This document shows, one piece after another, positions 4,216-60,517 of a DNA stretch of 64,000 nucleotides. The translations under genes were made by a program, and so were the position numbers. The stretch lies in assembly GCA_025786725.1 (NCBI GenBank), contig JAHLTZ010000009.1, forward strand, positions 1-64,000, written 5' to 3'. Source of the stretch: Syncephalis fuscata S228. Its lineage: Eukaryota > Fungi > Zoopagomycota. The number at the start of each line of letters is the position of its first letter. Within the stretch, counting starts at the first letter, position 1. Under the pieces are notes generated by a model. It was not told where the DNA came from, searched no databases, and saw only the letters and a program-made list of their open reading frames with translations.

Positions 4216-7156
4216 ATGACTACTTCCAATAAAGTAATTGATAGTTTGTCGTTATCTACAACGACAGATGACACAAATAACCAGGAAACCAAGGCTGCTA
4301 CCACCTATAAACAGCTTGTAAATAAGCTACTACCAAGACCACAAACGAATGAAGAACGTTTAGCGAGTCATCGACTAGTTCTAGCGTTAAAGAAACAACA
4401 AACAGAGTCTGTACCAAGAAAACATGGCGGTGGTTCACGTACAGGAGGCAAGCTTGTAAAGTTTAATAAGCAAACACTATCGCTATCTACAACTACAACC
4501 ACCGAGACTAGTAATAGTAACAGCAATAGTAGTAGTAACACTGAAGCTATTATACTTGAAAGTATCAAATGTGATGAACATAGTTATTGGCGTACACCTT
4601 GTCCTTTAGCCACAAAGATTCGTGGTCTATTTATTTGTCAATGCGATGCAAATCATTCTTGCCTGACGATGAACCAGGTGTTATTACTGATGAACTTGAT
4701 ACTGAATTGACATCATCAGCATCATCATCATCATCGAGACAAGGTTATCAAATGGTAATACGTGGCTATGATAAATTCTTTTCTATTGGTGATATACCAG
4801 CCACCCAGGTAAATATATATATATATATATTATTATACCAATTAATACATTAAATGAATAGAGAGATGCCATTGAATCCAATACAGTTGGGCCGTATGAA
4901 GTGAGTCAAAAAGAGAATGGATGTATTGTATTTATGGCTGCACTATCTTCAACACAACTCGTGGTTAGTTCAAAGAATTCACTGGGTGGTGGAGATGCAC
5001 TGGCCCATGCAGAAGTGGGACGCCAATGGCTTTATCGACACTTGAACCGAGTCAATAGAACTGAGTTAGAGTTCTGTCAATTATTACATGATCAACAAAT
5101 CACTGCCATATTTGAGGTAGGATTTATTAACTATTATAGTATTAGTACTAAAATATATATATATATATTCTATTAGTTATGTGATGATGCATTTGAAGAA
5201 CATGTTGTAGCCTATCCACCTGAAAGGCGTGGACTTTATTTACACGGTGTTAATCGAAATGTAGTAGAGCTTAAAACATGGCCTAGTAATCAGGTTCAGC
5301 AGTTGGCCGTAGCCTTTGGATTTCATCGTACAGACTATCATGTATTTGATACATTGGATGAAGTGTTGCATTATTGTGAATCAGTACAGAATAAGCAGAG
5401 TATCTATGATAATGGCGAGCAAATAGAAGGGTTTGTGTACGTGGCCACACGGTAAAAGAGAATACACCATTCTTTTTAAATATAAATTTGAAGAACCATA
5501 TTTAATGTTCCGAGAATGGCGTGAAGCAACGAAGGTTCTCCTCGCTGGACGGCCCTATTCACCGCGTTACGTATGGACAGTGGATTACATTCAATGGTGT
5601 AAGAATAAGCTAAAGAAGAGCCTGAGCTATTTAAAGAGTATCAACAAAATCGTGGTATTATTGAAGTAAGAAATGCTTTCCTTGATTGGTGGCAATCACA
5701 AGATAAAGAAATTATAGGCGCACAATTACTACCATCTAATAAGCGTAAAGAGTTATGGAAGACATCAACTGATAACTATAGTAAACAACAACAACAACAG
5801 CAATCAACTACAAAGGTTGATTATAATGAATTTCAACGTGATTCAACTTTATTGTTAAAACGACCGCTTATTACACCTGTAAAGAAATTAGTGATTATAC
5901 CAGTGGCAGTTATTGGCTGTGGTAATTATATAACTAGCTAGTATTAATCGTTAATAACTTTAATATGGATATTTAGGTAAAACAACATTATCTAGAGCAC
6001 TGGCTCAACTATTAGATGCCAGTCATATTGAGAGTGATAACATGGCCGGCAAAAGAAAACGAGATAAATTCAATCAAGCACTAATTGAATCATTAAAGCA
6101 ACACACAGTGGTTATTGCAGATCGGTAATTACTAGAATTACTATAATAATTTATTAAAACTAATATTGATTTAGTAATAACCATCAACCAGATCATAGAG
6201 GAAATATTGCTGGAACAGTTAGAAGTGTTTATCCAGAGGCTGCTCTAGTAGTGATTCATTTTGTTCAACGGCATCCTGATCGTATATTTAGAATGTCTTG
6301 TGAACGAGTTAGACAACGTGGCGAACAGCATCATCAGTAACCCCTATTAAAACACCAGATTATGCCCGTATTATTAGACAATTCCAACGTGATTTTATAG
6401 CACCTGATTCAGAACTGAACCCTGAAGATGCGACCATTGATCGTATTATACCGCTTGATCCACTCGATTCATTACATAAGAATCTACAACTAGTACTTGA
6501 TGAATTAATGCCTCTACTAGATCGACCCTTACCTTCATCGGAACAAGTCAACGATGCTATAGATATGGCTATAACCTTTAAACTACCCATTGATACTAGT
6601 AATACATCTACTATTACGCAACCACCATGTCCACCAGCACCGGCCTATATTGGTATTGCTATTGAATCAGCCTCTATTATGGATAGAATGACCGACTATT
6701 TTGCTTCTCTGGATCATTCACTACAAACGCAATTCTTTAACCAATTAGTGGCCAATGACCGTATTCAATCATCATTTCATGTTACACTTTGCCATATTGC
6801 TGATCGAAAACGTCATTTTCAAAACATTGAAATATGGAAAAAGTATATGTCACATCTTAATAGTCTAGACGATACACAACCCACTATTGTTACCTTCTCT
6901 ATTACGCATATTGTATGGGATAATGATATTATGGCTCTTAGAGTATCTCTACAAAGTCCTGATTGGATAGCTGCCACCAATAGTTATCCACATATTACTA
7001 TAGGTACACGTACAGCCGATGTTAAAGCACGTCAATCAAATCTATTAATGGAACAGGCATTTGCCTCTACTACTCCATCTAATAAAGATCTACCTAATAG
7101 TAGTAGTAATAGTAGTAAAGAAGATCAAAATGAGGTCTCATTACCAACATCTGAAT

Positions 7157-7190
<34 letters not shown>

Positions 7191-7332
7191 AACAGTCCTT
7201 CAACAACCCACTATTTCTTATGCCATGATGGTTACTCAATCACCTTCAACGACAACAATGACAACACCTTCTATTATTACATTGGAACATCCATGGTCAA
7301 TGACCGGTATTCTTACTAGTTATTATCGTTAA
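4216..7332 (+). CDS. TRL1: Fungal trifunctional tRNA ligase (adenylyltransferase, kinase, cyclic phosphodiesterase)
   Basis: IRGLF, RGYDKFF, ligase motif I SQKENGC, FELCDDAFEEHV, kinase P-loop IPVAVIGCGKTT, IADRNNH, and CPDase HxT motifs FHVTL and PHITIGT. Several introns; apparent frameshifts near 4650, 5435, 5615 and 6340. Confidence 0.93.
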
Positions 7333-39539: not shown

Positions 39540-42500
39540 ATGAATCGTCACTATATAGTACCTATACCTCCTCCTCCTCCAGCTCTCTCTACTCCCTCAC
39601 CGCCAACGCGACATCAACCGCCAGATCGCTATTATATTGGACCTTTACCAACTTTATCGTTGGGATTCTACAAATCACCGTCACAACAACGTCCACTACA
39701 TCAGCCATGGTACTATTTTCTATCCTCTCCTTCTCCACTACGTACTAGTCAACGACGACAACAACAACAACAACAACAGCAACAACAGACATTGTCACAG
39801 TCGCGACAACTTGGTAGACAGAACAGACCATCTAGGTGGTTCCGTCATGCACTTAGGTCAAGGTCATGTTTTAATTCATCCTCGCCTATTCAACGATTAA
39901 ATAACCATAGTGACACTAGTGCTAGTCATGAGAACATAAATGCTTTACCTGTGACGTCATCAAATGTACATCAGCCTACTATTAATGAACAACAATCGTC
40001 AACTCATCCTATTTCATTTGACAATAGTACAAGCATTAGTAGTGGCAGTAGTAGTGACCATACAAGTAATGGCATTCACACACCGCTATTATCAGATGTA
40101 CACCACACGACACTTTCATCTGATCGTATTACTCGACCTGTAACACCACAGACACCCGTTGACTCAATAAGGCGAATAGATAGCTCAATACATCCTGCAC
40201 CTAAACGAATAAGCTCTACTGTATCACATAATCAATTGGGTACATCTACTATGGCATTACCGTCAACATCAGCCCCTGTAACAACAATGACAAGTCCTGT
40301 AGAAGAATATAAATCATCACAAATAGTTAATACAACAAATACGAAAAATGAACAATTTGAACAAACAAAAGACAGACGTTTAATGGCTGTGCATACCAAT
40401 TCTATGCCATTATTACAAGCACCTCATGAAACAGTCCATGTAACTGCCAATCAATCAACTACGCCAGATTTAACGACATCTCCTGTAATTACTATGCCAT
40501 CTTCAGAATCCCTATGCCATTTAATGTTATTGCGCGTTGAACGTGTTCATCCACACAATATGCCGGATATTTACCATCAAGGTGTTGCTCTATTTACTTC
40601 TCTTCGTTCTGTTCAATGGCGACAAGTGGTAGGACAGCTGGATGGTCAAAGTCTTTCATTTCATCAGCCATCGTCGCCTTCTTCTTCGGTTCCAGTAAGT
40701 AGATTAGTGTTTAGTTAATATTACTAATTATTTGTATTAGGGAAAGGTACTATATTCGTTACAGTTAGCAAATTATCAACGTGTAAAACTAAGCTATTTT
40801 TCACCACTGGATAATTCACTGGCCTTGGCACTCACTTCAAGGGATAGAGAAGATTTAGTAGAAGTATTCATATTCCAGTTAAAAGAACACAATCTACTAC
40901 AATTATGGTATGGCGGCCTTGAAAAGTATATTGATCAAAAAACAACTTGGGAAGAACAAATGATGGCCGGTAAAGATGTATGTCAATTCCTACGTGTTGC
41001 ACCGATACCTGCAACAAAAATATCTTCAGCTGGATCACCATCAATACAGCAAGAACACCAACGACGAGAACGACAACGACGTCGAGAACAGCATCGACAG
41101 TCAAGGACAAGTCAACGGCGATTAAGGAAACATTCTAAATTACAGAATCGACATTCGATTGATGCAACACAACATATACCAGCACAGCCAGACATGACAG
41201 ATACAGCTGTCGAAAAAGATATGGAATCCTCACTAAAACGACCTTTAAGCTTAGTGGATCGTCGTGTTGTACAAGGTGTATTATCTCGTACGTCCATTGA
41301 TGACGATAGTAATAGTAATAGTAATCGACATTCAAATGATGAAACAAGAAATACGGTGGATGAAAGAATGGCGAAACGTCTTTCTAAACGTCACAGTAAA
41401 CAATCAATTCGGCATAGTAATGTGACAGATGCATCTGGCGATAGTAGTAAAAATTATGATAAGAAGTCTACCACTATATCCGCAGCTATGTCACAAATGG
41501 CCGCTGTAGGTGTAGCACCTATGATTGTACTTGCTGCATCTACAAATATACCTGATATCGAGCCAGTATCTTCTCAAGAGAATGAACAACCGCAGAATGA
41601 ACACGAGCCTATAGCAATAGAGACCATTCATCGATGGTTACCGCCTTCGTTACAGATTATAGTTGAAGTACCGGATATTGGAACCAAGATACAAATTACA
41701 CTGGACATTGCTGAATTCAATTCTCTTTTATCCTATGCTCAACTACGTACTATTGTTCTTAATGTGTTAATGGGCCGCAAAACACCATATAATAAAGGTG
41801 ATACACCAAGTGAGGCAATGGAACGACGTAAACAATTGGCCGCTCTTTGGAAATACTGGAGTCAATGGGAAGTGGGTCTAGTATGGCGACGATGGTATCG
41901 ATTAGACTGGCCTCATCCTGACGCGTATATTTCTATGGCCCGTATTCTAGAACAGGTAGGTATTTGAAGTATATATATATAGTTATATTGTTTATTAATA
42001 TGTTGATAGACTCATGCTCTTGAATTAAGACGCACTTCTCATTATGGCACTTTTATTGATAGCAATCCATTGGATCGACAGCATCGCTCATCTAATGCTG
42101 TGTCAATAAATCGACCATTTTACTTACCAAGTGAGAGTAATTTAAAAACACCGCCACCGGATGTAGAAGGTTGTTTATTGCGTGTATTTACAGCCAAACA
42201 GATACTAGCAACATTTATGACACGTCAACGGAAACATGCCCGTGTTCGTCGACTCTATTTAGCGACACGGGGCCGATATTTGTTTGTAACTACGCCGAAT
42301 CATTTACCATTACCACAATTTACTTCATCCAACTATAATGAAGCTAGTGTAGTAGTACGCCGGTTAAAGACTTGTTTTAGTGAATCCAATCATGATCATA
42401 CAAATCATTTGCATAAAAGAACTGATGATGTAACAATGTTACCGCGACTGGCCGGTGCAGTCATTGCTCTGATCAATTTAGTACGCGTTAATGTAACTAT

Positions 42501-43818
42501 GCCATCGGAAGAAGAGCGTGATAATGAATTACACCGCACACCCGTCGCTAGAACGAGTAGAAATAACGAGAATGAAAACACTGAATTAACAAGGCACCAG
42601 CAAGAAGTGAGTCGTTATTTGCCAGCATCAACATCGCCATCAGCATCAAATCGTGATCATAGCCGGATTAGTGCTTTACAGAGACACCGACTACGATTGC
42701 AACAGCAACGACAAGAACGACAACGATCACAACAACAGCAAAGACGTCTTGAATTAGTATTTCGTAATGGCTATACACTTCGACTGTTAGCTACCGATGA
42801 AAGATCGGCTCAAGAGTGGCGACAGCGACTTCAATCCATCGCTCATTATTGGCGTCAGTATAACGAACAAGAACAGAAATGGAAAAAGGCCGCATCCATC
42901 ATTAGTGGCGCATTTACGAGTCAGCGTCAAGTTCTAGATCGTGATGGCCAACCAATTGATGGATGTAATAAAGAACGTAATAATCATTTACCATTTACGC
43001 GCGAAATTGGCACAACAGAAGACTATGAGACGGGATCGGTTGAAGTAAACGCTCAATTATGGCCTGTTTGTACATCACTAGGCTGTCAATCGATTGTGCA
43101 AACGGGCATTTTGTATCGTAAAACAAGTCGGCGACAACCAGCTTATCGTTTATTCTGTTTATTAACGCGTGATGGCTATTTGTGCTATTTCGATGCCGAT
43201 TCACTTAATATGACTACGCATCATAATAGCACACATTACAATTATATTCAATTGGCGCGAGGACGTACACGATTGCATAGAGCCTACGTTTATTCTCGAT
43301 GTCGTGACCGAGAAGTGGTTCGTCAAACAAAAATGACCTCTATTGATCGGCCTACGAGTCGATATATTGGACAAGGTCTATACACACGGGACAGTTTACT
43401 CGATTGTAGCTTTTCCATCTGGCTTCCTAGTAGACATCAACACTTTTGGCACACCAATGGTCAGCGAGGCCATGTCATCACTTTTCGGGCATCGGATAGA
43501 TCAAGTACAGAGGCATGGGTCACTGCTCTACAGTCAGTTATCGATGGCCTACAATGTTCAATGCCTGATCACACATTAGGGAGAGAAGAAGCGACGCACA
43601 ATAATCACGAAACTAATGAATTGGATGACTCGATTATTGAACAGCATAGTAATTTAGCAGGTAATCTGCGTCATAATAGTACTCGACGAGTAACTGAACC
43701 AAATACATCTCAATTATCTACTTCATTATTGGTAGAGCATGAGGATACAAGTTTTAATTTTATGTCGCCTATGTTTAACGCGTCTTCAATTGATCAAAAA
43801 GAAGATACGATCATTTAA
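39540..43818 (+). CDS. SPO71: Spo71/Mug56-like multi-PH-domain protein
   Basis: VGLVWRRWYRLDW, THALELRRTSHY, PPPDVEGCLLR, LELVFRNGYTLRL...EWRQRL, CTSLGCQSIVQTGILYRK, ITFRASDRSSTEAWV; 2 introns. Confidence 0.75.
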
Positions 43819-48285: not shown

Positions 48286-49473
48286 TGTAAAACTGAAAAA
48301 ATATGTAATAGAAAAAGAAAAATAATAAATATTTGATGCGCAGTGATATGATTATTGCCAAAAATTCGGACCACTGTAAATTACACGTTTAACTAGATAC
48401 TTTTGGATGCTACTATTTACCTTATACCGGAGATATAGCTGTAAGCTAGGAATTTAGAATCATTTTTCCTTGTTTGCCTCGTATTATATCTTGGTTCGCA
48501 TAACATAAAACATGCTGCTCATATGTTATAACTTCTATTTGCAGTGTATGGCGTTACACTGTTTATTCCTTTTGACCAAAAGTCATTATATCGGTGCAAC
48601 TACCGTGACGTTCAAAAGAAAATTGTACTGCGTATATTTATGTTTAAATCAATTAGCTGAAGCATTTGGGTTTAGCCAGTTTAATTGAATTATAAGCATG
48701 ATATGTTTAAACATTTCCATACTATGTGTTTAAGTGATATGCTAGTAGAATGAATATACTGTAGTTATAGGACAGTAACAGTAGTATGCCAGTAAATTCT
48801 ATTAGAAAATTCTTTATTAAACAGGTTAGTTAAAAACGGAAAAAAGTTGCACCGTCATACTAAATGATAACGTTGTTTGTTGCTATGTGACGACAATATG
48901 GTTTCTGATTGGTTTATTGCTATATAAAACTGCGGAACTTAATACAAAGTTTGTAATACTTGATACTGTCGGTGATAGGTTTATAACATGAAACGATCCA
49001 AGTAATGATTGTTACATCATAGAGAATGATGTTGCGGCTCCTTGTTAAAAATGGAGTCAATACAACTTAGACAGAAACGTCATTGCCTTTACCCCATACT
49101 TTAGGAGTGTTAAATGACTTTGAAAGTCTATGTTTTTCAAACATGAAATACGTATTTAACCAATTAGTTGCGTAGATGTCAACAAAATAACCTGTTTTTA
49201 TCACTAAATCATATGGAAACAAAGCCCCGTCAGTAATAGTCGAGACGCCCATGCTGCTGCGTTGTCTTCAACATATCTAACTATACCGTGCAACGTACTT
49301 TCGTTTACAAGTCAGCTATAAAATGGACGATTGAATCGTGTTAGATTTCAATTTGTTAACTCATAACGCCTTTACAACCTCGCCAATACACTCTACATCG
49401 ACTACATTGCTCTGCTGCGCAGTTATCCAAATCGCCGGTCGATTCAACAACATCAACCTCTACTACGATCAAA

Positions 49474-50774
49474 ATGGTTAAAATCAACATGTTCACTATT
49501 GCAGCCGGCTGCGTCTTGGCCCTTGCATCTTTCACACCGCTTACCGATGCCATTCCTGTCGGCTTTGATCGTAAGTTAAAAATGATTTATATTAAATTTA
49601 TTGTATTAACGTGTAGCCAAAGCATCTGCTCCAATTGGCGCAAACTTTCTAAATGTAAAAGCAAATACGCAAAACACACTTGGAGTGCCTACACTTGTGA
49701 TTACCAAACTGTTGCAATCAAACAATGTACTGGTTGTAGGCAATGCCAGCTTCCAAAGTAAGCCTGCTTTTTTCAAGTGCTCTAAAGATGCACAATCAAT
49801 GGATAACGAGAAAAAGGCATTTGATGTAAGTACAGTATTTATTGCTATGCAATCATCGATTAACATGTTTGCCAATCCAGCTGCTCAAGAAAGCCAAAGA
49901 CTCGCTTAAAGCTCCAAAAACAGCTGGCAGCCAGTTTATTGCTCAGCCATTGCACGCATTCACCAGCAATGGTGGCTACTGTACAATATATACCTATGGC
50001 GGTAACACTACGCTCAGAGACGCACTTAGCAAGGCCAGTTGGGCAGACAAGGCCAAGTACTTGCCTGTCATTGCCAATCAAATGCTTCAAGGTTTGGCAT
50101 ACATGCATCGTGTTGGTGTGGCGCATAACGACATCAAGCCAGACAGTAAGTTAAATTGGATATTAGTATTCAGTTTGTTAACAATCTGCCATTAATTACT
50201 AGACGTGCTTGTACAAATCTCTGGCAACAACGTCATGACCACACTAATTGATTATGATTTGGGACTGGATATACGAGTTCCTGTTATTCATCTTAATAAA
50301 CCAGTTGTCATCAAGGGTATGACCATGGGATTCAGAGCTCCGGAAGCTCAGATTCCAAATGCCATGGTTGATGCCAGTAAAAGCGACTCATGGAGCGTTG
50401 GAGCCTCCATTTACAACATGTTAACGGGCCTAACTCTTGGTTACGACTATGACAAACAACGTGCCGTCTGGGTCAGCTATATGTTGGCTGCTGGTGCACC
50501 ATCTGCCAATCAAGCCCGACCTGCTGCGCCAGCCAAAAATATGCCAGTCTTCCCGACCAGCCCAAATGGCCAGATCGAAAGGTCACTAGTCACAGCACTA
50601 TCCATTATGGATACACTGTTGACCAAGGATCCCAAAATGCGGCCAACTCCTCAAGCGCTACTTGACAATCAACTTACAGCCGGCAATATGGTGACATGGT
50701 CTTCTGGTGTGCTTAACAAGCTTCGCGGTGTTAAGCAACCCATTAACAATCCGGTGCCTAAAAGAAAGGTGTAG
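49474..50774 (+). CDS. Secreted Ser/Thr protein kinase, copy 1 (signal peptide, intact catalytic motifs)
   Basis: Signal peptide MVKINMFTIAAGCVLALASFTPLTDA-IP; AFFKC, DNEKKAF, HNDIKPDNV, IDYD, GFRAPE, DSWSVG, DPKMRPT. Introns at 49571-49616, ~49826-49880 and 50146-50202. Confidence 0.9.
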
Positions 50775-52317
50775 AAGTATTTGAATAAATACGGTAATAA
50801 AAATCAGTAAAGTAATTTAGCAATGTTTTTTATTTTGTAACAATTAGTAGCCTATTCATGTTTATATATAGTATTTATATTTTTAAATCTACATTATTGT
50901 TTATTTTCTTCCCATTGTGTATTCATCGCATTTTATCGTATATTAATTACGTTTTATTTAAGAATGATATGTGCTTATTACTAACTGCTTCAGCTATAAA
51001 TTTTAAAAGGGGCTATCCACTAAACTATACACACTATAATTTCAACACTATCATTATACTTTTATTGTTGTGTACTAATTCTATCACACATAACTATATC
51101 GTTTGCCGACAACAATATTAATAAAAAGCTATTCTTTTATTGTTATTTGCATTTATTGTATTTACACACTTCTCTCACTGCGCATTTTATGCTATGTAGC
51201 TCTTATTAGAGCCCTGATAGTAGTACGAATATTTAATATTGTCACCCAAATAATAATAAATATAAAATTTTATTAATATAATTTTCTTCAGCTTATTGTC
51301 AGAATTTATAAAGTTGAGAATTTTTGTTATAAATTTGCTGACTCAAGTTATATCTAAAAGTTAAAGCTATTCGATATTGATAACAGTTATTTTATTGAAT
51401 TAATATTGAAATATCTGGTTAAGTTGCCTCTTATGTTTTCTTCCCTTATTTGGGTGTCTGGCTAACTTTACATCGTTACATTTCTGGTGCTGTAACAACT
51501 TTTTGTTAATAAAAGCTATTTTTTAATTTTAGTTACATTGTTGCAATCACCAATGATGCGATGATGTAACGTCGATCAAGCAACTAAATGAAAAAAATAG
51601 AAGTAGCTTAGTCAGATGTTTAGTACTGATTTAAAATAAAAAATATCATTAGTATCAAATGATTTTAGCTTCTAACAATAGCTCAAGTCAGTATACTTAT
51701 AACAAAAGTCGTAATTGTATAAATCTTATTTACGTAATTTAGCTCATTTTAGCCACATTAACAGCAACCTTAATCGTGTTTTATTTGTTAAAAAGCTTCC
51801 AACGATATACTTGTGGCAAATGCAACTTAAAAAACATAATACAAAAATATGATATGTAAAAATTAGCACTAGTAATATTAAAGCAAATGTTTTTATTGAA
51901 GAAAAAATCGAAACCACTAATAAAGCAGATATTATAAAAAATGTGCTATTAAATAGTCTTTTCTTGCAATAATGTTTATTGCAGATTAAACAAAGTGTGG
52001 TGCAAATAAAAAAAATTTAATTAATAAATCATTTAAAATTTTAAAAACGAGGCATTTTTCAAAATTCCCCTTTAAATAAATATAAAAATAAAATTTTAGT
52101 AGAGTAATTAGCACGCACTTTTATATTTAATAATAGTTAATAACTTGTTTGTAATATATATATTTATATAGCATGGCTTACTTATTTAAATGTATTAACG
52201 TAACTTATATATGCACCATTATATGTATGTCACAATAGCCATTGAAAAATAGATACTAATAAGCTGTTTTTTAAACTTTCTTATTAAACGTTTATTATTG
52301 CGTCTATTTAGATGCTT

Positions 52318-53618
52318 TTATAGCCTTCTTTTAGGCACCGGATTGTTAATGGGTTGCTTAACACCGCGAAGCTTGTTAAGCACACCAGAAGACCATGTCA
52401 CCATATTGCCGGCTGTAAGTTGATTGTCAAGTAGCGCTTGAGGAGTTGGCCGCATTTTGGGATCCTTGGTCAACAGTGTATCCATAATGGATAGTGCTGT
52501 GACTAGTGACCTTTCGATCTGGCCATTTGGGCTGGTCGGGAAGACTGGCATATTTTTGGCTGGCGCAGCAGGTCGGGCTTGATTGGCAGATGGTGCACCA
52601 GCAGCCAACATATAGCTGACCCAGACGGCACGTTGTTTGTCATAGTCGTAACCAAGAGTTAGGCCCGTTAACATGTTGTAAATGGAGGCTCCAACGCTCC
52701 ATGAGTCGCTTTTACTGGCATCAACCATGGCATTTGGAATCTGAGCTTCCGGAGCTCTGAATCCCATGGTCATACCCTTGATGACAACTGGTTTGTTAAG
52801 ATGAATAACAGGAACTCGTATATCCAGTCCCAAATCATAATCAATTAGTGTGGTCATGACGTTGTTGCCAGAGATTTGTACAAGCACGTCTAGTAATTAA
52901 TGGCAGATTGTTAACAAACTGAATACTAATATCCAATTTAACTTACTGTCTGGCTTGATGTCGTTATGCGCCACACCAACACGATGCATGTATGCCAAAC
53001 CTTGAAGCATTTGATTGGCAATGACAGGCAAGTACTTGGCCTTGTCTGCCCAACTGGCCTTGCTAAGTGCGTCTCTGAGCGTAGTGTTACCGCCATAGGT
53101 ATATATTGTACAGTAGCCACCATTGCTGGTGAATGCGTGCAATGGCTGAGCAATAAACTGGCTGCCAGCTGTTTTTGGAGCTTTAAGCGAGTCTTTGGCT
53201 TTCTTGAGCAGCTGGATTGGCAAACATGTTAATCGATGATTGCATAGCAATAAATACTGTACTTACATCAAATGCCTTTTTCTCGTTATCCATTGATTGT
53301 GCATCTTTAGAGCACTTGAAAAAAGCAGGCTTACTTTGGAAGCTGGCATTGCCTACAACCAGTACATTGTTTGATTGCAACAGTTTGGTAATCACAAGTG
53401 TAGGCACTCCAAGTGTGTTTTGCGTATTTGCTTTTACATTTAGAAAGTTTGCGCCAATTGGAGCAGATGCTTTGGCTACACGTTAATACAATAAATTTAA
53501 TATAAATCATTTTTAACTTACGATCAAAGCCGACAGGAATGGCATCGGTAAGCGGTGTGAAAGATGCAAGGGCCAAGACGCAGCCGGCTGCAATAGTGAA
53601 CATGTTGATTTTAACCAT
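52318..53618 (-). CDS. Secreted Ser/Thr protein kinase, copy 2 (inverted duplicate)
   Basis: Reverse complement of copy 1; the protein is identical except the last two residues (..KRRL vs ..KRKV). Confidence 0.9.
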
Positions 53619-55167
53619 TTTGATCGTAGTAGAGGTTGATGTTGTTGAATCGACCGGCGATTTGGATAACTGCGCAGCAGAGCAATGTAGTCGATGTAGA
53701 GTGTATTGGCGAGGTTGTAAAGGCGTTATGAGTTAACAAATTGAAATCTAACACGATTCAATCGTCCATTTTATAGCTGACTTGTAAACGAAAGTACGTT
53801 GCACGGTATAGTTAGATATGTTGAAGACAACGCAGCAGCATGGGCGTCTCGACTATTACTGACGGGATTGTTTCAATGTGGACTTCATAGATGTAAGACT
53901 GTCGTGCCTGTATCAACATAGTTAGTTGACCAAATAACTACCCCTGTTCAGAATACATGGGATTCCAAAATTACTTAATGCTTATAAGGTGTGAAGGTAA
54001 TAGTGTCGTTTATTATTGGCCCGTGTTGGTATCATTCCTAACAAGGGGTACTACACATTTCTACAAGAATGCAGGAATTGTAGCTTAGGCTGTTTCATTA
54101 CAACAGTCATATCAGCAATGACGTTCAAATATCGCAAGTTACAAGTCAAGACCCGCTGTTTCATCCATCAATAGGCCAGTCAATCCTACGTTGTCGTGAC
54201 ACGTAACAAACACTATTTTATTGCATGAACAATATAATTTTTTTCCACTTCAAATTAAGCTTTTTTATTAGCTAAATTTACGGATGACATGTTCATTTCA
54301 TATAGTATTTTTCCATTTTCGAATTAAATTACTATAATGAAATATGGTTATACCAAATTTATCAAGAATGAATATACAATATTTAAAGTTGTACGAGAGT
54401 TGTCATCGGCCGCATGGGGGAGGGGAAATATATGGTTGGCAACTTTTTCGTTTGAGGATGTTCATTGCGACTTTTTGATTTGTACGTGAAAATACAGTGT
54501 ATGTTTTGACACTTATTATATCACAATTCCATACCATGTTACAGGTTTTGTACTTGATTGAAATAAGTACTTTATGTTTTAGTCTGGCCATCGTTATGCT
54601 GCTTGCTATTTTAGCTATACACTTAGTAAAAATCAAATTGTTTAGAATTAATAAAAATAAATTTAGTATAGATATTTACTTGATGTTTTTAGTGCTTCTT
54701 TGTAAAACTAGACGGTTTTATTTTAATTGATACATCGAATTCACTATCACCAAAGGCAGTGATTTTTTTTGAGCTGTGGCAAGAAAAATTGAAGACTGAC
54801 AATATGTACACTATTAATACATTTAATATGCTATTAATAACATGTTTTAATGATTGCAACTACTTTTAAATATTATATTATTATTTTATCGTACACACTA
54901 TTTACCAATACTATATTTTATGATTACACTTGTATTCTGTATTTGATAGCTTTTATTATTTACAAACCATGGTAGCATTATTATTATACATAATTATTTA
55001 AAAGCACATTCAATAACAACTATTAATTATAATAAAAATAATTTAGTGTAAATTTATTAACATGTCAAATTAAACAGCATGGCCCAACCATTATTGATAC
55101 ACCTATCAGTCAATTGTATTAGTAAATAATCAAATATAGATTACACATAGCAATAAATAAGATGGTA

Positions 55168-55248
55168 CGCCGTCAGGGTTAAAAAGCTCGTTGATTGATC
55201 CACACGGTTTTTCAGGTGAAGAAATTCAATAAAAAACATCATTCGGCG
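55168..55248 (-). ncRNA. snR47: Box C/D snoRNA snR47/SNORD36 (U36) homolog
   Basis: Terminal stem CGCCG/CGGCG; box C ATGATGT; guide TTGAATTTCTTCAC + D' CTGA (antisense to LSU GTGAAGAAATTCAA); guide CGAGCTTTTTAAC + D CTGA (antisense to SSU GTTAAAAAGCTCG). This is the known dual target pair of snR47/U36. Confidence 0.92.
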
Positions 55249-55423
55249 CTAAAGAGAAAACAAACAAACAAAATTACAAAGTTGTACTTACCAACTACAA
55301 AACCGACAAAGTATGTAAACACGTTTCTCAATACAAGCACACGTGTCTACATACTTGCCTAATTGTCATCAGCGATCGATAGGTGTTATCGATGCATGGA
55401 TGATACTGTCAACTACTACCTTT

Positions 55424-55429
55424 AAAAAA
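55424..55429 (-). terminator. T6 run, putative Pol III terminator of the MRP RNA
   Basis: TTTTTT just after the 3' strand of P1. Confidence 0.6.
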
Positions 55430-55894
55430 GGGACCGGAAACACCGCGAGAGTAAGCCCCGTTGCGTTACGTTCGCCCTTCAGAGCGCTACTGCCAGAGGC
55501 AACCAATGCTTAGTAGGCACGAACGCCGCCGCATAACTGTGCTATGACGAATGGTCGTCCCCGTCCAGGATAGTACTCCGTTGTCACTTCGAACTCGGCC
55601 CATTAAAAGAGCCTCTTCGTTCGTTGGACAAACGGCACGTGCTATACGCCGTCTTCGTCGACAAGCAACGAGGAACGACCTACAACACGCGGGACGAGCA
55701 TGACGAGTGAACAAAAGGTCGTTTACCGGCCGTTCAACACTTTCTGCCAACGTGTCCGGGGACTTTCCCCAAAGCATGTAAATTGAAAGGTCGTGCAGCC
55801 ATCGAACGATAACCACACGCCAATCCGTATGTAGTGCTTTGATATTCTACAACAAGAGAGAGAGAAAAGGCGGCGCTTCGCAGGTGTTTCCGGT
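55430..55894 (-). ncRNA. NME1: RNase MRP RNA
   Basis: P1 helix ACCGGAAACACC/GGTGTTTCCGGT; CR-I GGGGAAAGTCCCCGGAC (55770-55754); CR-V AACGCAACGGGGCTTACTCT (55467-55448) forming P4; GAAAG loop after CR-I; GC-rich; ~465 nt. Confidence 0.93.
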
Positions 55895-56609
55895 AAAGAA
55901 ACGTACAAGTGGGATGCGCGTCAATCGATCGCCTACTTATACTGCCATGTTGTAAAATAAAATATAGATAAAAAACTAAAAGCAAATATTAAAGAATAGC
56001 TAGACAGGGGGTGAGGCCATGTACAACTATAAACTTGTTTAGATGATAGAACAAGAAACTACCAAAAACGGTGATAAACATGTGTCGCATATCTCTTGCT
56101 TTATCTTCAGCTATGCACGTATCATCACCACCATTACTGCTAATAATTATATGACTGGGAATTAACGAATAAATGATCACAGTGAAAACAAAGAAAGACA
56201 AAGGGAGACGATAGTTAATAATAACGTGATATGAATGTCTCATTTCATAGTCTATGGTTGTATACACACACACATGCATTTTTACTCCCTTTCTCTCTCA
56301 CTCTTTGACGCTCGGTTTTCTCTTCACTCTGCCCAATTTATCGCCACCCTTACTCCCCCGCGCACTCACACAGCCAGCTGTCATTATCCTTTTTCTCGTC
56401 TTTCTTTTTGAACACTATTTACTGCTTGCAGTGGTCTAAAGCTAGGTGTTATTGGACGTGTGGTCATTATTTACACGCCATCTTGCTATTGATTACTACG
56501 GCCACTATTCCTATTACTATTATTATTAGTACAGCTACTACTGCTCTATTGTTCGTTTTTTTACGCTTCTTGCTGATTAAGCAGTACATCTGATCGTATT
56601 ATTCTCATC

Positions 56610-58006: not shown

Positions 58007-58480
58007 CTTCCTCTCTATCTCTCACTCTCTATCTTTTAAGCCTGTGTTCCACCACATTATTACCTGTTTGCACTGCACGTCACATTGCAGTTCTCAATTG
58101 AATTGTCCACAAGTGACGACTATTCTTCTTTATCATCTTCACCATCGTCTATCTTTCACTTCGTGTCCGTGTGATTGATTGACGTGAAGTGGATCCACGC
58201 TGGAAACACAACGTGTTCTTGTTCATTCCTATTGTGTTACTGCCATCATCGGCAAAACATCCTTGGCATTAGTTACTTATCGATATTAACGATAACGGCA
58301 AAACAACAGTCTTTGCAGTAAAGACGTGACGCACTGTCCTGTTCATTTAAATCCCTTCCGTTTATTCGTTTGGCCTTTTCTTTGCTTAATTCGCCTTCTT
58401 CTCTTCCTCCTCCTTAGCTTGCAAGTCTTTTGCTATATTGATTCATACTTACTTGTTCATTTTTATCATTGATTTCTATT

Positions 58481-60517
58481 ATGTCTACTACTGTTGACAA
58501 AGTTACCGATGCTACAGCTTCTCATCCTGAGTTGCTAGAGCCGACCATTGATGGTGTCAATGCCATTGCCGTACCCAAAGCACTACAAGATGGTAGCGAT
58601 GGTTGGCCCAAGGCCCATATCAGCTCATTTAAACAATATCGTGAAATGTGGGAGGAAAGTCTACGCAACCCAGAAGACTTTTGGTCAAAGCTAGCTAAAG
58701 AAACACTTCATTGGTACCATCCATTCGAAGTTGCTACTAGCGGTGGCTTTGAACATGGCGATGTCGCGTGGTTCCGTGGCGGCAAGCTTAACGTATCCTA
58801 CAACTGTGTGGATCGCCATGCGAATGTCGACCCAAATCGGGTAGCCATGATTTACGAGCCGGATGAACCAAACCAATCGCGTAAAATCACTTATGGCTGG
58901 CTATTCCGTGAAATGAATCGTGTGGCTAATTTGCTACTTAGCTATGGCTTGCGCAAAGGTGACGCCGTGGCCATTTACATGCCTATGGTGCCCGAAACGG
59001 TTGTAGCTATGCTTGCCTGTGCCCGTATTGGCTGTCCACACACCGTTGTATTTGCCGGCTTTAGCTTTGAAGCACTTCGTGATCGTATTAATAACGCTAA
59101 ATGCCGTGTTGTTTTCACCGTTGACGAGGGCCGTCGTGGTGGTCGTCCCATTGCCACTAAGCATATAGTTGACCAGGCATTAGCCCATGGCTGTCCATCA
59201 GTTGAAAAGGTCGTTGTATTCCAACGCGGGCCTGAACCAGCCGACATTGTTATGACAGAAGGCCGTGATGAATGGTGGCATACTGCTGTTGACCGCCATC
59301 GTGCGTACTGCCCACCTGAATGGATGGATGCTGAGGATCCACTATTCTTGTTATACACATCTGGTTCAACGGGTACGCCAAAGGGTGTTGTTCACACGAC
59401 AGCTGGTTATTTGTTAGGCGCAGCCGTTACAACCAAATACGTATTTGATTATCATCCTGGTGATATTCTCGGGTGCACGGCTGATGTCGGATGGATTACC
59501 GGCCATGACTATATCGTTTATGGGCCGATGTGTCTAGGCGGTACTTCAATTCTATTTGAATCGGTGCCGACTTATCCCGATGCCAGCCGATTCTGGAATT
59601 TAATTGCTGACCATAAAATTACACACTTTTACACAGCACCCACGGCTATTCGCGCTTTGCGTCGTCTCGGTGACCAATGGCTTGAAGGCAAGGACCTATC
59701 ATCATTGCGAGTCATCGGCTCTGTCGGTGAACCAATTAATCCTGAAGCATGGCACTGGTACAACGAGAAGGTTGGCAAGAATCGCTGTGCTGTTATTGAT
59801 ACTTATTGGCAAACGGAGACGGGTGCTATTGTACTGACACCATTACCTGGCGCCATCGCTGCTAAACCAGGCAGTGCATCTGTGCCTTTCTTTGGCATAG
59901 ATCTGGCTATTCTCGATCCAGCCACCGGTCAAGAGCTTACGGGTAACGATGTTGAAGGCGTGCTAGCTATTAAGCGCCCTTGGCCATCGATTATGCGCAC
60001 TGTGTACAATACACATGAACGCTATCTTAATGGATACATGCGTGTCTATCCTGGCTATTACTTCACTGGCGATGGCTGTTACCGCGATGCCGATGGCTAC
60101 TACTGGATTCGTGGTCGTGTTGATGACGTTATCAACGTAAGCGGCCATCGATTGAGTACGACAGAAATCGAATCGGCTTTGATTCAACATCCAGCAGTTG
60201 CCGAAACAGCCGTTGTTGGCCAAAACGACGACTTAACCGGTCAGGCCATTTGCGCTTTTGTCACGATTAAGCCAACACATAGCGATGTTATACCTAAAGA
60301 ACTTGTATTACAAGTACGCAAAACAATTGGACCATTTGCTGCACCTAAACATCTTCACTTGGTAGCTGAATTACCTAAAACACGCTCAGGCAAAATTGTC
60401 CGCCGTATACTGCGTAAGATTGTTAACGGTGAAGCTGATAGTCTTGGTGATTTAAGTACCGTCGGCGATCCAAGTGTCGTTGATGATATCATCAAACTAG
60501 TCGCTGAAAAGCAGTAG
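58481..60517 (+). CDS. ACS: Acetyl-CoA synthetase (AMP-forming), intronless
   Basis: [58 protein letters not shown]. Confidence 0.97.

Follow-up and report, generated by a model that had tools for sequence, protein, structure and literature searches.

The window analysed here is a 64,000-nucleotide stretch of the genome of Syncephalis fuscata S228 (contig JAHLTZ010000009.1, positions 1 to 64,000), in which two convergent, mirror-image and near-identical copies of one four-exon gene each encode a protein of 378 residues. The preferred reading, to which we would give about an even chance, is that both copies (A on the forward and B on the reverse strand; Table 1) specify the same secretory-pathway Ser/Thr kinase, probably acting in the cytoplasm of the host hypha or at the parasite-host interface. 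An earlier note on this DNA had taken its source to be a mycoparasite, and the NCBI names on three of the proteins discussed below (P0008, P0012 and P0006) bear this out, as they belong to S. fuscata, an obligate mycoparasite. The same note had described both copies as a signal-peptide-like start followed by a lone kinase domain. This description holds, given the n/h/c layout of the N-terminus, its position at the first AUG of the cDNA and a score of 82.8 bits against the Pfam Pkinase profile.

Gene structure and transcription

A repeat search of the window returned a single inverted pair, whose arms are 1576 nt long, 99% identical and separated by 1489 nt. When the arms were compared base by base, the lone difference before position 50767 was found at 50297, where it is synonymous in the codon frame. 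The arms diverge after 50767 and the two products differ in their last two residues only (KV versus RL), while similarity is also lost past the outer ends of both arms. The introns of copy A are of the form GTAAGT..AG and measure 52, 55 and 57 nt, and the joined frame is open. Searches were run exon by exon and full-length analyses used the database proteins of copy A (P0012) and copy B (P0008, KAI9596730.1); exons were joined for the frame check and the dN/dS calculations only, with an X placed at each break in frameshifted paralogues. Both proteins carry the NCBI name 'kinase-like domain-containing protein [Syncephalis fuscata]'. The NCBI model P0008, of 375 residues and ending in KRRL, starts at the second Met, five residues in, and places the intron 1 acceptor 6 nt upstream, which adds Lys-Ala.

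One public sequencing run (X1), whose kind we guessed to be RNA, contains this stretch, and its contigs were compared with window positions 48800-54300. An 854-nt Logan contig of this run skips exactly 52890-52946, 53212-53266 and 53470-53521, each of which ends in CT..AC, that is, GT..AG on the minus strand. Because the skipped stretches are exactly the introns, the run contains cDNA and all three introns are confirmed; intron 1 is present in the 52-nt form of the P0012 model (window 53470-53521 / 49571-49622) and not in that of P0008. As the 96-nt leader of this transcript has no ATG, the start MVKINMF... corresponds to its first AUG, and the predicted signal peptide begins there. The kinase cDNA contigs have word depths of 1400-1650, whereas a contig next to them has about 5, which hints at strong expression, of which word depth is a poor measure. 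Since the arms are identical, the transcript may be assigned to either copy A or copy B.

These data bear on the view that the proteins are ordinary cytosolic kinases with a misread N-terminus, the hydrophobic start being either absent from the protein or not a targeting signal. The start of the P0008 model at the second Met and the fact that secretion is read from the sequence would both agree with such a view. However, both candidate start codons precede the hydrophobic core, the cDNA has neither an upstream ATG nor an upstream exon within 96 nt, and two further species as well as divergent paralogues show the same layout, so that we consider this explanation very improbable.

The predicted N-terminal signal peptide and mature protein

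The N-terminus of P0012 reads MVKINMFTIAAGCVLALASFTPLTDA followed by IPVGF, and combines a basic n-region (Lys3), a hydrophobic core of about 12-17 residues (FTIAAGCVLALA) and small residues at -3 and -1; the segment after the core is SFTPLTDA, followed by IPVG, which places a Thr at -3 and an Ala at -1 of the predicted cleavage site. All of the highest-scoring 19-residue Kyte-Doolittle windows of the protein fall in this N-terminal segment (best 1.73). The same layout is conserved in P0001, in the S. pseudoplumigaleata homologue P0009, and in P0006 and P0032, and dN/dS over the signal-peptide codons is 0.08. Downstream of this segment come a brief linker and a single kinase domain. The Kyte-Doolittle scan of P0012 revealed no second hydrophobic segment or membrane anchor, and the hydrophilic C-terminus (KRKV or KRRL) has no HDEL or other ER-retention signal. 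The predicted mature protein would have 352 residues, a mass of 38 kDa and a pI of 9.7, with two N-x-S/T sequons and two cysteines.

Two further features of the termini were noted. A motif like A-[TI]-P-[VIL]-G-[FY] lies at the predicted cut (window 49552-49575) and recurs at the family loci L030, L039, L040, L043 and L044 and in P0009. The narrower form A-T-P-[IV]-G-F was considered as a translocation signal and dropped, being present in some members only and not family-wide. At the other end, the C-terminal tail of copy A, PVPKRKV (50751-50771), resembles a monopartite nuclear localisation signal, and its counterpart in copy B is PVPKRRL (52321-52341); this basic tail is not kept in the paralogues or in S. 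pseudoplumigaleata.

The kinase domain and its catalytic residues

The above score of P0012 against the Pfam Pkinase profile (PF00069), 82.8 bits, is well over the cut-off of 31.7 and comes from positions 42-261 of the 263 in the profile, and single exons reach 33.6 and 31.9 bits. The alignment starts only at position 42, which indicates that the N-lobe is atypical. In P0012 numbering, which is used throughout, the catalytic set is complete, with Lys84, Glu95, Asp184, Lys186, Asn189, Asp205 and Glu236, as well as Asp250 and Arg335. Thus, the catalytic Lys (FFKC), the alphaC Glu, HNDIKPDN, DYD and APE listed by the earlier note are all present, and its statements that the Gly-rich loop is missing (LLQSNNVLV stands at the site) and that there is no transmembrane segment were also right. 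Neither the canonical GxGxxG motif nor the DFG triplet is found in P0012. The form D-x-K-P-x-N is that of Ser/Thr kinases, and HND marks a non-RD kinase; being non-RD, the enzyme might dispense with activation-loop phosphorylation.

An AlphaFold2 model built from a 28-row alignment (pTM 0.74; pLDDT 85-95 in the kinase core, residues 1-38 disordered) is that of a complete bilobal kinase. Foldseek matched the model to many kinases with probability 1.00, with E-values of about 1e-12 to CaMKII, CDK2 and IRE1, and VIA-align gave Z-scores of 21-22 to Sky1p, DYRK1A and CLK over 270-295 residues. The best PDB match by sequence is only 1.5e-9, and look-alikes in the ESM Atlas are generic kinase clusters. 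The structural ranking is nearly tied among many groups of the eukaryotic protein kinase (ePK) fold, and we therefore claim no kinase-group membership.

Assignment to previously defined divergent families was also considered and rejected. The ROPK profile (Pfam Kinase-like, PF14531; cut-off 25 bits) had no match to P0012 at E <= 0.1 and reached 15.4 bits with P0009 and 17.9 with P0006. Similarly, the FunK1 profile (Pkinase_fungal, PF17667; cut-off 24.1 bits) did not match P0012 and gave 15.4 and 16 bits with P0009 and P0006, respectively. The Fam20/Four-jointed and CotH families were absent from the Pfam matches at E <= 0.1, which comprised only Pkinase, PK_Tyr_Ser-Thr, APH, Kdo, Pkinase_fungal and Kinase-like.

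A conserved pair of cysteines in the N-lobe

The mature protein has its two cysteines at position 85, immediately after the beta3 lysine (Cys85), and in beta5 (Cys134). In the N-lobe alignment of the family described below, the catalytic Lys is found in 21 of 22 members and Cys85 in all 22. Cys134 is present in each of 21 family exons, and Cys85 persists in the 20 weakest family matches (20/20), even where the catalytic Lys is lost. None of 20 canonical kinases that we aligned has a Cys in either column. Since strands beta3 and beta5 run antiparallel side by side in the N-lobe of kinases, a cross-strand Cys85-Cys134 disulfide is a reasonable guess. Such a putative bond may staple the N-lobe and would suit an oxidising compartment; if the pair does form a disulfide, the ePK N-lobe would here be adapted to oxidising compartments in an unusual way.

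An expanded family of active and inactive kinases in S. fuscata

Exon-by-exon searches of the organism's own 29.4-Mb assembly recovered both window copies, a redundant contig (C162) and two tandem paralogues at 203-209 kb of contig C361. The C361 paralogues share 81% DNA identity with the window gene, with a dN/dS of 0.12 at a dS of 0.66, pointing to strong purifying selection on this subfamily; the dS between them is 0.012. Within the fetched locus (L022, C361:202500-210000) the two genes, at about 290-1800 and 5440-6935, are 99% identical over a gene-sized unit only, with a spacing of 5134 nt. Each carries 1-nt deletions, in one copy at the equivalent of window position 50672 and in the other at the equivalents of 49899 and 50588, none of them in a homopolymer. 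Owing to these deletions the NCBI model P0001 is truncated at 328 residues, and the frameshifted paralogues would be either recent pseudogenes or assembly errors. Contig C162 (13.5 kb; L023, C162:1-6000) is a 99.6% copy of window 49210-55991 that starts within the palindrome. We rejected it as a source of extra gene copies, since at this identity it would be the same palindrome assembled a second time, either redundantly or as an allele; several other family loci are likewise duplicated on small contigs.

Twenty further genomic loci were fetched, and all have an N-lobe exon of the same kind. Across the sampled loci introns occur at the same profile positions, including one within the codon of the catalytic-loop Asn. 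The family is typified by a signature comprising x-F-x-K-C, an E..AF ending at a phase-0 donor, the beta5 Cys, AHNDIKPxN, IID[FY]DL, xPE and DxWxxG, which is present in both window copies and the features of which recur in the 22 sampled loci. About a third of the sampled members, among them L031, L025, L039, L040, L042 and the third family member of the window, have lost catalytic residues. This third member is the one for which an earlier count of three kinases in the window needs to be qualified: it is real, its N-lobe scoring 96.9 bits against the family profile, whereas its interpretation as an intact kinase was rejected, since it has HGNINTD in place of HxDxKxxN and INYEQS in place of DYD, and it is a pseudokinase.

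A profile of 22 N-lobe exons (alignment A3) found 103 exon matches in the genome at E <= 0.001; about 13 of these lie on redundant contigs, leaving approximately 85-90 loci, in agreement with the earlier suggestion of an expanded family. All of the weakest 20 matches keep the Cys and only 9 of the 20 keep the Lys; the weak tail therefore consists of pseudokinase members of the same family. By a crude test for signal-peptide-like starts within 400 nt upstream of the N-lobe exon, such starts were seen at 17 of 22 family loci versus 3 of 22 on the opposite strand, and each of five independent full-length database models (5/5) begins with a Met followed by a hydrophobic stretch. Two loci, L026 (C246:217000-221000) and L027 (C246:189700-193500), have a Gly-rich stretch, LGGGDGSGMDIALG with GGGDGSG, between beta1 and beta2. 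Its retention in these two, and its absence from the other sampled members, suggests that the Gly-rich loop was lost secondarily within the family.

Given this mixture, the window proteins might be secreted kinase-fold binding proteins devoid of real catalysis, that is, functional pseudokinases that bind a host or parasite partner or ATP. The absence of the Gly-rich loop and the DYD in place of DFG could be read in this way, and much of the family has lost the Lys, the catalytic loop or the DFG and yet keeps the Cys pair; because of such losses, the common function of the family need not be catalysis. On the other hand, paralogues of this subfamily share all six catalytic residues at a dS of 0.66, and the S. 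pseudoplumigaleata homologue, at 51-53% identity, has them too, a conservation that is hard to explain in the absence of selection for catalysis, and the Gly-rich motif is dispensable in FIKK kinases (PMC7116245). We hence regard the purely binding role as unlikely for the window pair, which in the preferred reading would be catalytically active.

Phyletic distribution

A HMMER search with exon 4 against 1.84 billion representative proteins found 7 at E <= 0.001, namely one paralogue, two metagenome open reading frames (ORFs), the distant S. fuscata protein P0006, two multi-domain kinases of generic type and a fragment (P0007) from another zoopagalean fungus, Thamnocephalis sphaerospora. When 5.8 billion proteins were searched by word index, the only additions were P0009 and an S. 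plumigaleata homologue of P0006 with 40% identity to it. In a profile search with 8 family sequences generic kinases dominated and no new kin emerged, and P0006 on its own drew in the S. plumigaleata homologue only. True kin were thus found only in Syncephalis, Thamnocephalis and the two metagenome ORFs, consistent with the expectation that this is not a widespread single-copy ortholog. P0009 is 51-53% identical to the window proteins, likewise has a predicted signal peptide and conserves all six catalytic residues. The intron position in the catalytic loop is common to the S. pseudoplumigaleata and Thamnocephalis homologues and a metagenome contig, and the latter two also share the DFD/DYD motif. 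In the T. sphaerospora locus (L046, KZ993806.1, 8-638) the DFD motif is accompanied by the intron in the catalytic-loop Asn codon, and the contig ends before the N-lobe.

In S. pseudoplumigaleata (L045, KZ989174.1) the kinase homologue is flanked by FOL3 and a ferric reductase within about 5 kb. The S. fuscata counterparts of these two neighbours lie about 15 kb apart on contig C317 (50712-67966), and no family kinase was detected between them, suggesting that members of the family have moved or turned over between species. Positional orthology of the S. pseudoplumigaleata gene is not claimed, as it shows no synteny with either S. fuscata locus. The interspecies identity of the neighbours is 57% for FOL3 and 94% for the ferric reductase, which places the 51-53% of the kinase at the fast end of the neighbour range, and not at an extreme.

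Functional implications

A scheme that would link these features is one in which a kinase domain of 38 kDa and basic character (pI 9.7) enters the ER by means of a cleavable signal peptide and leaves the hypha of the parasite. All residues that phosphotransfer requires (Lys84, Glu95, Asp184, Lys186, Asn189 and Asp205) are kept in the domain, and the window kinase would be an active representative of a family, specific to Syncephalis and related fungi, in which about 85-90 genes encode active kinases and pseudokinases. As ATP is needed for kinase action, the likeliest site would be the cytoplasm of the host hypha or the parasite-host interface. Phosphorylation of host proteins is suggested by this need for ATP, by the parasitic lifestyle and by analogy with the ROPK and FIKK kinases, and the window genes are good candidates for encoding enzymes that the parasite would export to target its fungal host.

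A competing explanation is that the kinase serves the parasite itself, in the lumen of the secretory pathway or at the cell surface: in the ER or Golgi it would phosphorylate proteins that the fungus secretes or builds into its wall, with no delivery to a host. Animal Fam20C and VLK are the comparison for such lumenal kinases, and ATP is available in the ER and Golgi. A signal peptide with intact catalytic residues fits this explanation equally well, as does the strong purifying selection (0.12), and the cDNA word depth of 1400-1650 versus 5, a poor measure as noted above, would suit an abundant housekeeping-like transcript. However, the proteins have no ER-retention signal, ending as they do in KRKV or KRRL, and no membrane anchor, and neither Fam20 nor another kinase family of the secretory pathway is among their Pfam matches. 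A housekeeping role also does not predict about 85-90 highly divergent paralogues, many of them lacking catalytic residues, that are confined to a parasitic lineage. These points make a resident kinase of the secretory pathway improbable, to the same degree as the purely binding role discussed above.

Several observations weigh against a host-directed secreted kinase. Secretion is read from the layout of the N-terminus, and the hydrophobic stretch of up to 17 residues could be an uncleaved signal anchor. No known host-translocation motif was found in the protein. The lack of a Gly-rich loop and the Asp that replaces the Gly of DFG could hamper catalysis or the binding of ATP. The strong purifying selection (0.12) differs from the arms-race pattern that effectors often show, and the 51-53% identity of the kinase between species is comparable with that of the housekeeping neighbour FOL3 (57%). 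Finally, transcription was seen in one cDNA run, which lends no support to host-induced expression. The effector interpretation of the earlier note is thus borne out in part: the parasitic habit, the expansion, the restricted distribution, the signal peptides, the motifs and the expression all agree with it, and the chain leading from secretion to the host would follow by inference.

To our knowledge, the effectors of fungus-on-fungus parasitism are almost unknown, zoopagalean mycoparasites have barely been studied at the molecular level, and the known secreted host-directed kinases are those of apicomplexans, oomycetes and bacteria. In the literature we found no paper on secreted kinases of Syncephalis or other Zoopagales or describing this family, nor any in which a true fungus has secreted kinases directed at a host; the closest report that emerged concerns predicted families in microsporidia (PMC5423893). 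The Syncephalis family is a candidate for a fungal, lineage-specific form of a type of weapon already known from parasites. More tentatively, and with less confidence than in the preferred reading of the window pair, we propose that Syncephalis possesses an ROPK-like 'secreted kinome' of about 85-90 genes, made up of active kinases that have no Gly-rich loop, with an N-lobe possibly stapled by a disulfide, and of pseudokinase partners, which would be delivered through haustoria into the host hyphae and rewire host signalling. In that case the two window genes would count among the members of this kinome that are competent in catalysis and strongly expressed. The locus also yields a concrete, expressed and, judging by its residues, apparently active member to clone and assay; the signature of the family (KC, the beta5 Cys, D[FY]D, the absent Gly-rich loop and shared introns) can be used for mining other Zoopagales, and its active and dead paralogues offer a natural series for studying the adaptation of the kinase fold to the secretory pathway.

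Organisation of the window

The GC content ranges from 24 to 50% over the whole window, and is about 40% in the kinase genes and about 26% in the spacer between the two copies; an earlier description of the family as lying in AT-rich accessory islands is therefore only loosely true. Flanking housekeeping genes include a tRNA ligase phosphodiesterase domain (6508-7332), eIF5 (15286-16497), a PH-domain protein (42070-43818) and acetyl-CoA synthetase (58469-60517), and since such genes flank the kinase loci, the family members sit among ordinary genes and not in a large separate compartment.

Table 1. Coordinates of the inverted repeat, the kinase gene copies, the motifs of copy A and the third family member in the window
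Feature	Position	Strand	Description
Left arm	49226..50801	+	Complete copy A with 248 nt upstream and a 3' flank of 27 nt
Right arm	52291..53866	-	Carries gene copy B
Gene copy A	49474..50774	+	Exons 49474-49570, 49623-49825, 49881-50145 and 50203-50774 (stop codon included); P0012 (KAI9596729.1), 378 aa
Gene copy B	52318..53618	-	Exons 53522-53618, 53267-53469, 52947-53211 and 52318-52889
Unique AT-rich spacer between the convergent copies	50802..52290		1489 nt; GC 0.26 over 51001-52000
5'UTR, at least 96 nt	49378..49473	+	No ATG; start context ATCAAAATGG; cDNA contig reaches 53714 on copy B, mirror stretch identical on copy A
Predicted signal peptide, aa 1-26	49474..49551	+	Likely cut after TDA; n/h/c layout by inspection, hydrophobic windows, conservation
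Beta1-turn-beta2, LLQSNNVLV	49709..49735	+	Site of the Gly-rich loop, no glycine; alignment with canonical kinases, DSSP of the model
Beta3 Lys84 (FFKC) and invariant Cys85	49775..49780	+	'KC' signature; family N-lobe alignment
AlphaC Glu95	49808..49810	+	Invariant in 22/22 members; within helix 89-108 of the model
Cys134 in beta5	49980..49982	+	Three residues before the gatekeeper position; invariant in 21/21 family exons
Catalytic loop HNDIKPD(N), H182-N189	50124..50145	+	Asn codon split by intron 3 (phase 1), completed at 50203-50204
DYD in place of DFG, D205-D207	50250..50258	+	Metal-binding Asp kept, Gly to Asp; family signature IID[FY]DL
APE, A234-E236	50337..50345	+	End of the activation segment; sequence reading and alignment
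Third family member	21812..23022	-	Signal-peptide-like start, degenerate kinase (pseudokinase); ORFs; N-lobe 96.9 bits against the family profile

Comparison with known kinase systems

The best structural neighbours of the window kinase are the CMGC kinases Sky1p/SRPK, DYRK1A and CLK (rmsd 3.4-4), with which it shares an insert between alphaG and alphaH. In contrast to it, these are cytosolic or nuclear proteins with Gly-rich loops and DFG, and the sequence identity is 16-20%. Among parasites related to fungi, two microsporidian species have expanded protein-kinase families among their predicted host-exposed proteins (PMC5423893). These resemble the Syncephalis family in being expansions of signal-peptide-bearing kinases predicted to be exposed to the host (PMC5423893), and differ in lineage and in the animal hosts; no microsporidian protein was among the homologues that we found.

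The Plasmodium FIKK kinases offer a parallel in the catalytic domain itself, being an expanded set, exported into the host cell, in which the canonical Gly-rich ATP-binding motif is missing and the other catalytic residues are kept. Those assayed so far are active (PMC7116245), and hence the missing Gly-rich loop does not rule out activity of P0012. The FIKK kinases are confined to apicomplexans and are distinguished by PEXEL-type export and by the FIKK motif N-terminal to the domain, neither of which is seen in P0012, and none was present among the PDB sequence or fold matches listed.

A parallel in organisation is seen with the ROPK family of Toxoplasma gondii, a parasite that also lives in contact with host cytoplasm. 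In both cases a signal peptide precedes a single ePK-fold domain, and a large lineage-specific expansion combines active kinases with many pseudokinases, so that the mix of live and dead members in Syncephalis would parallel that of the ROP kinases. The two differ in that there is no detectable specific homology between them, rhoptry secretion has no fungal counterpart, and the Syncephalis proteins are devoid of the arginine-rich amphipathic helices and have signatures of their own in the KC after beta3, the beta5 Cys and the DFD/DYD. The comparison with ROP and FIKK kinases is thus one of analogy, with no homology beyond the shared fold. If the proposed secreted kinome is real, it would have arisen by convergence on the apicomplexan strategy, as the first system of effector kinases operating between two fungi.

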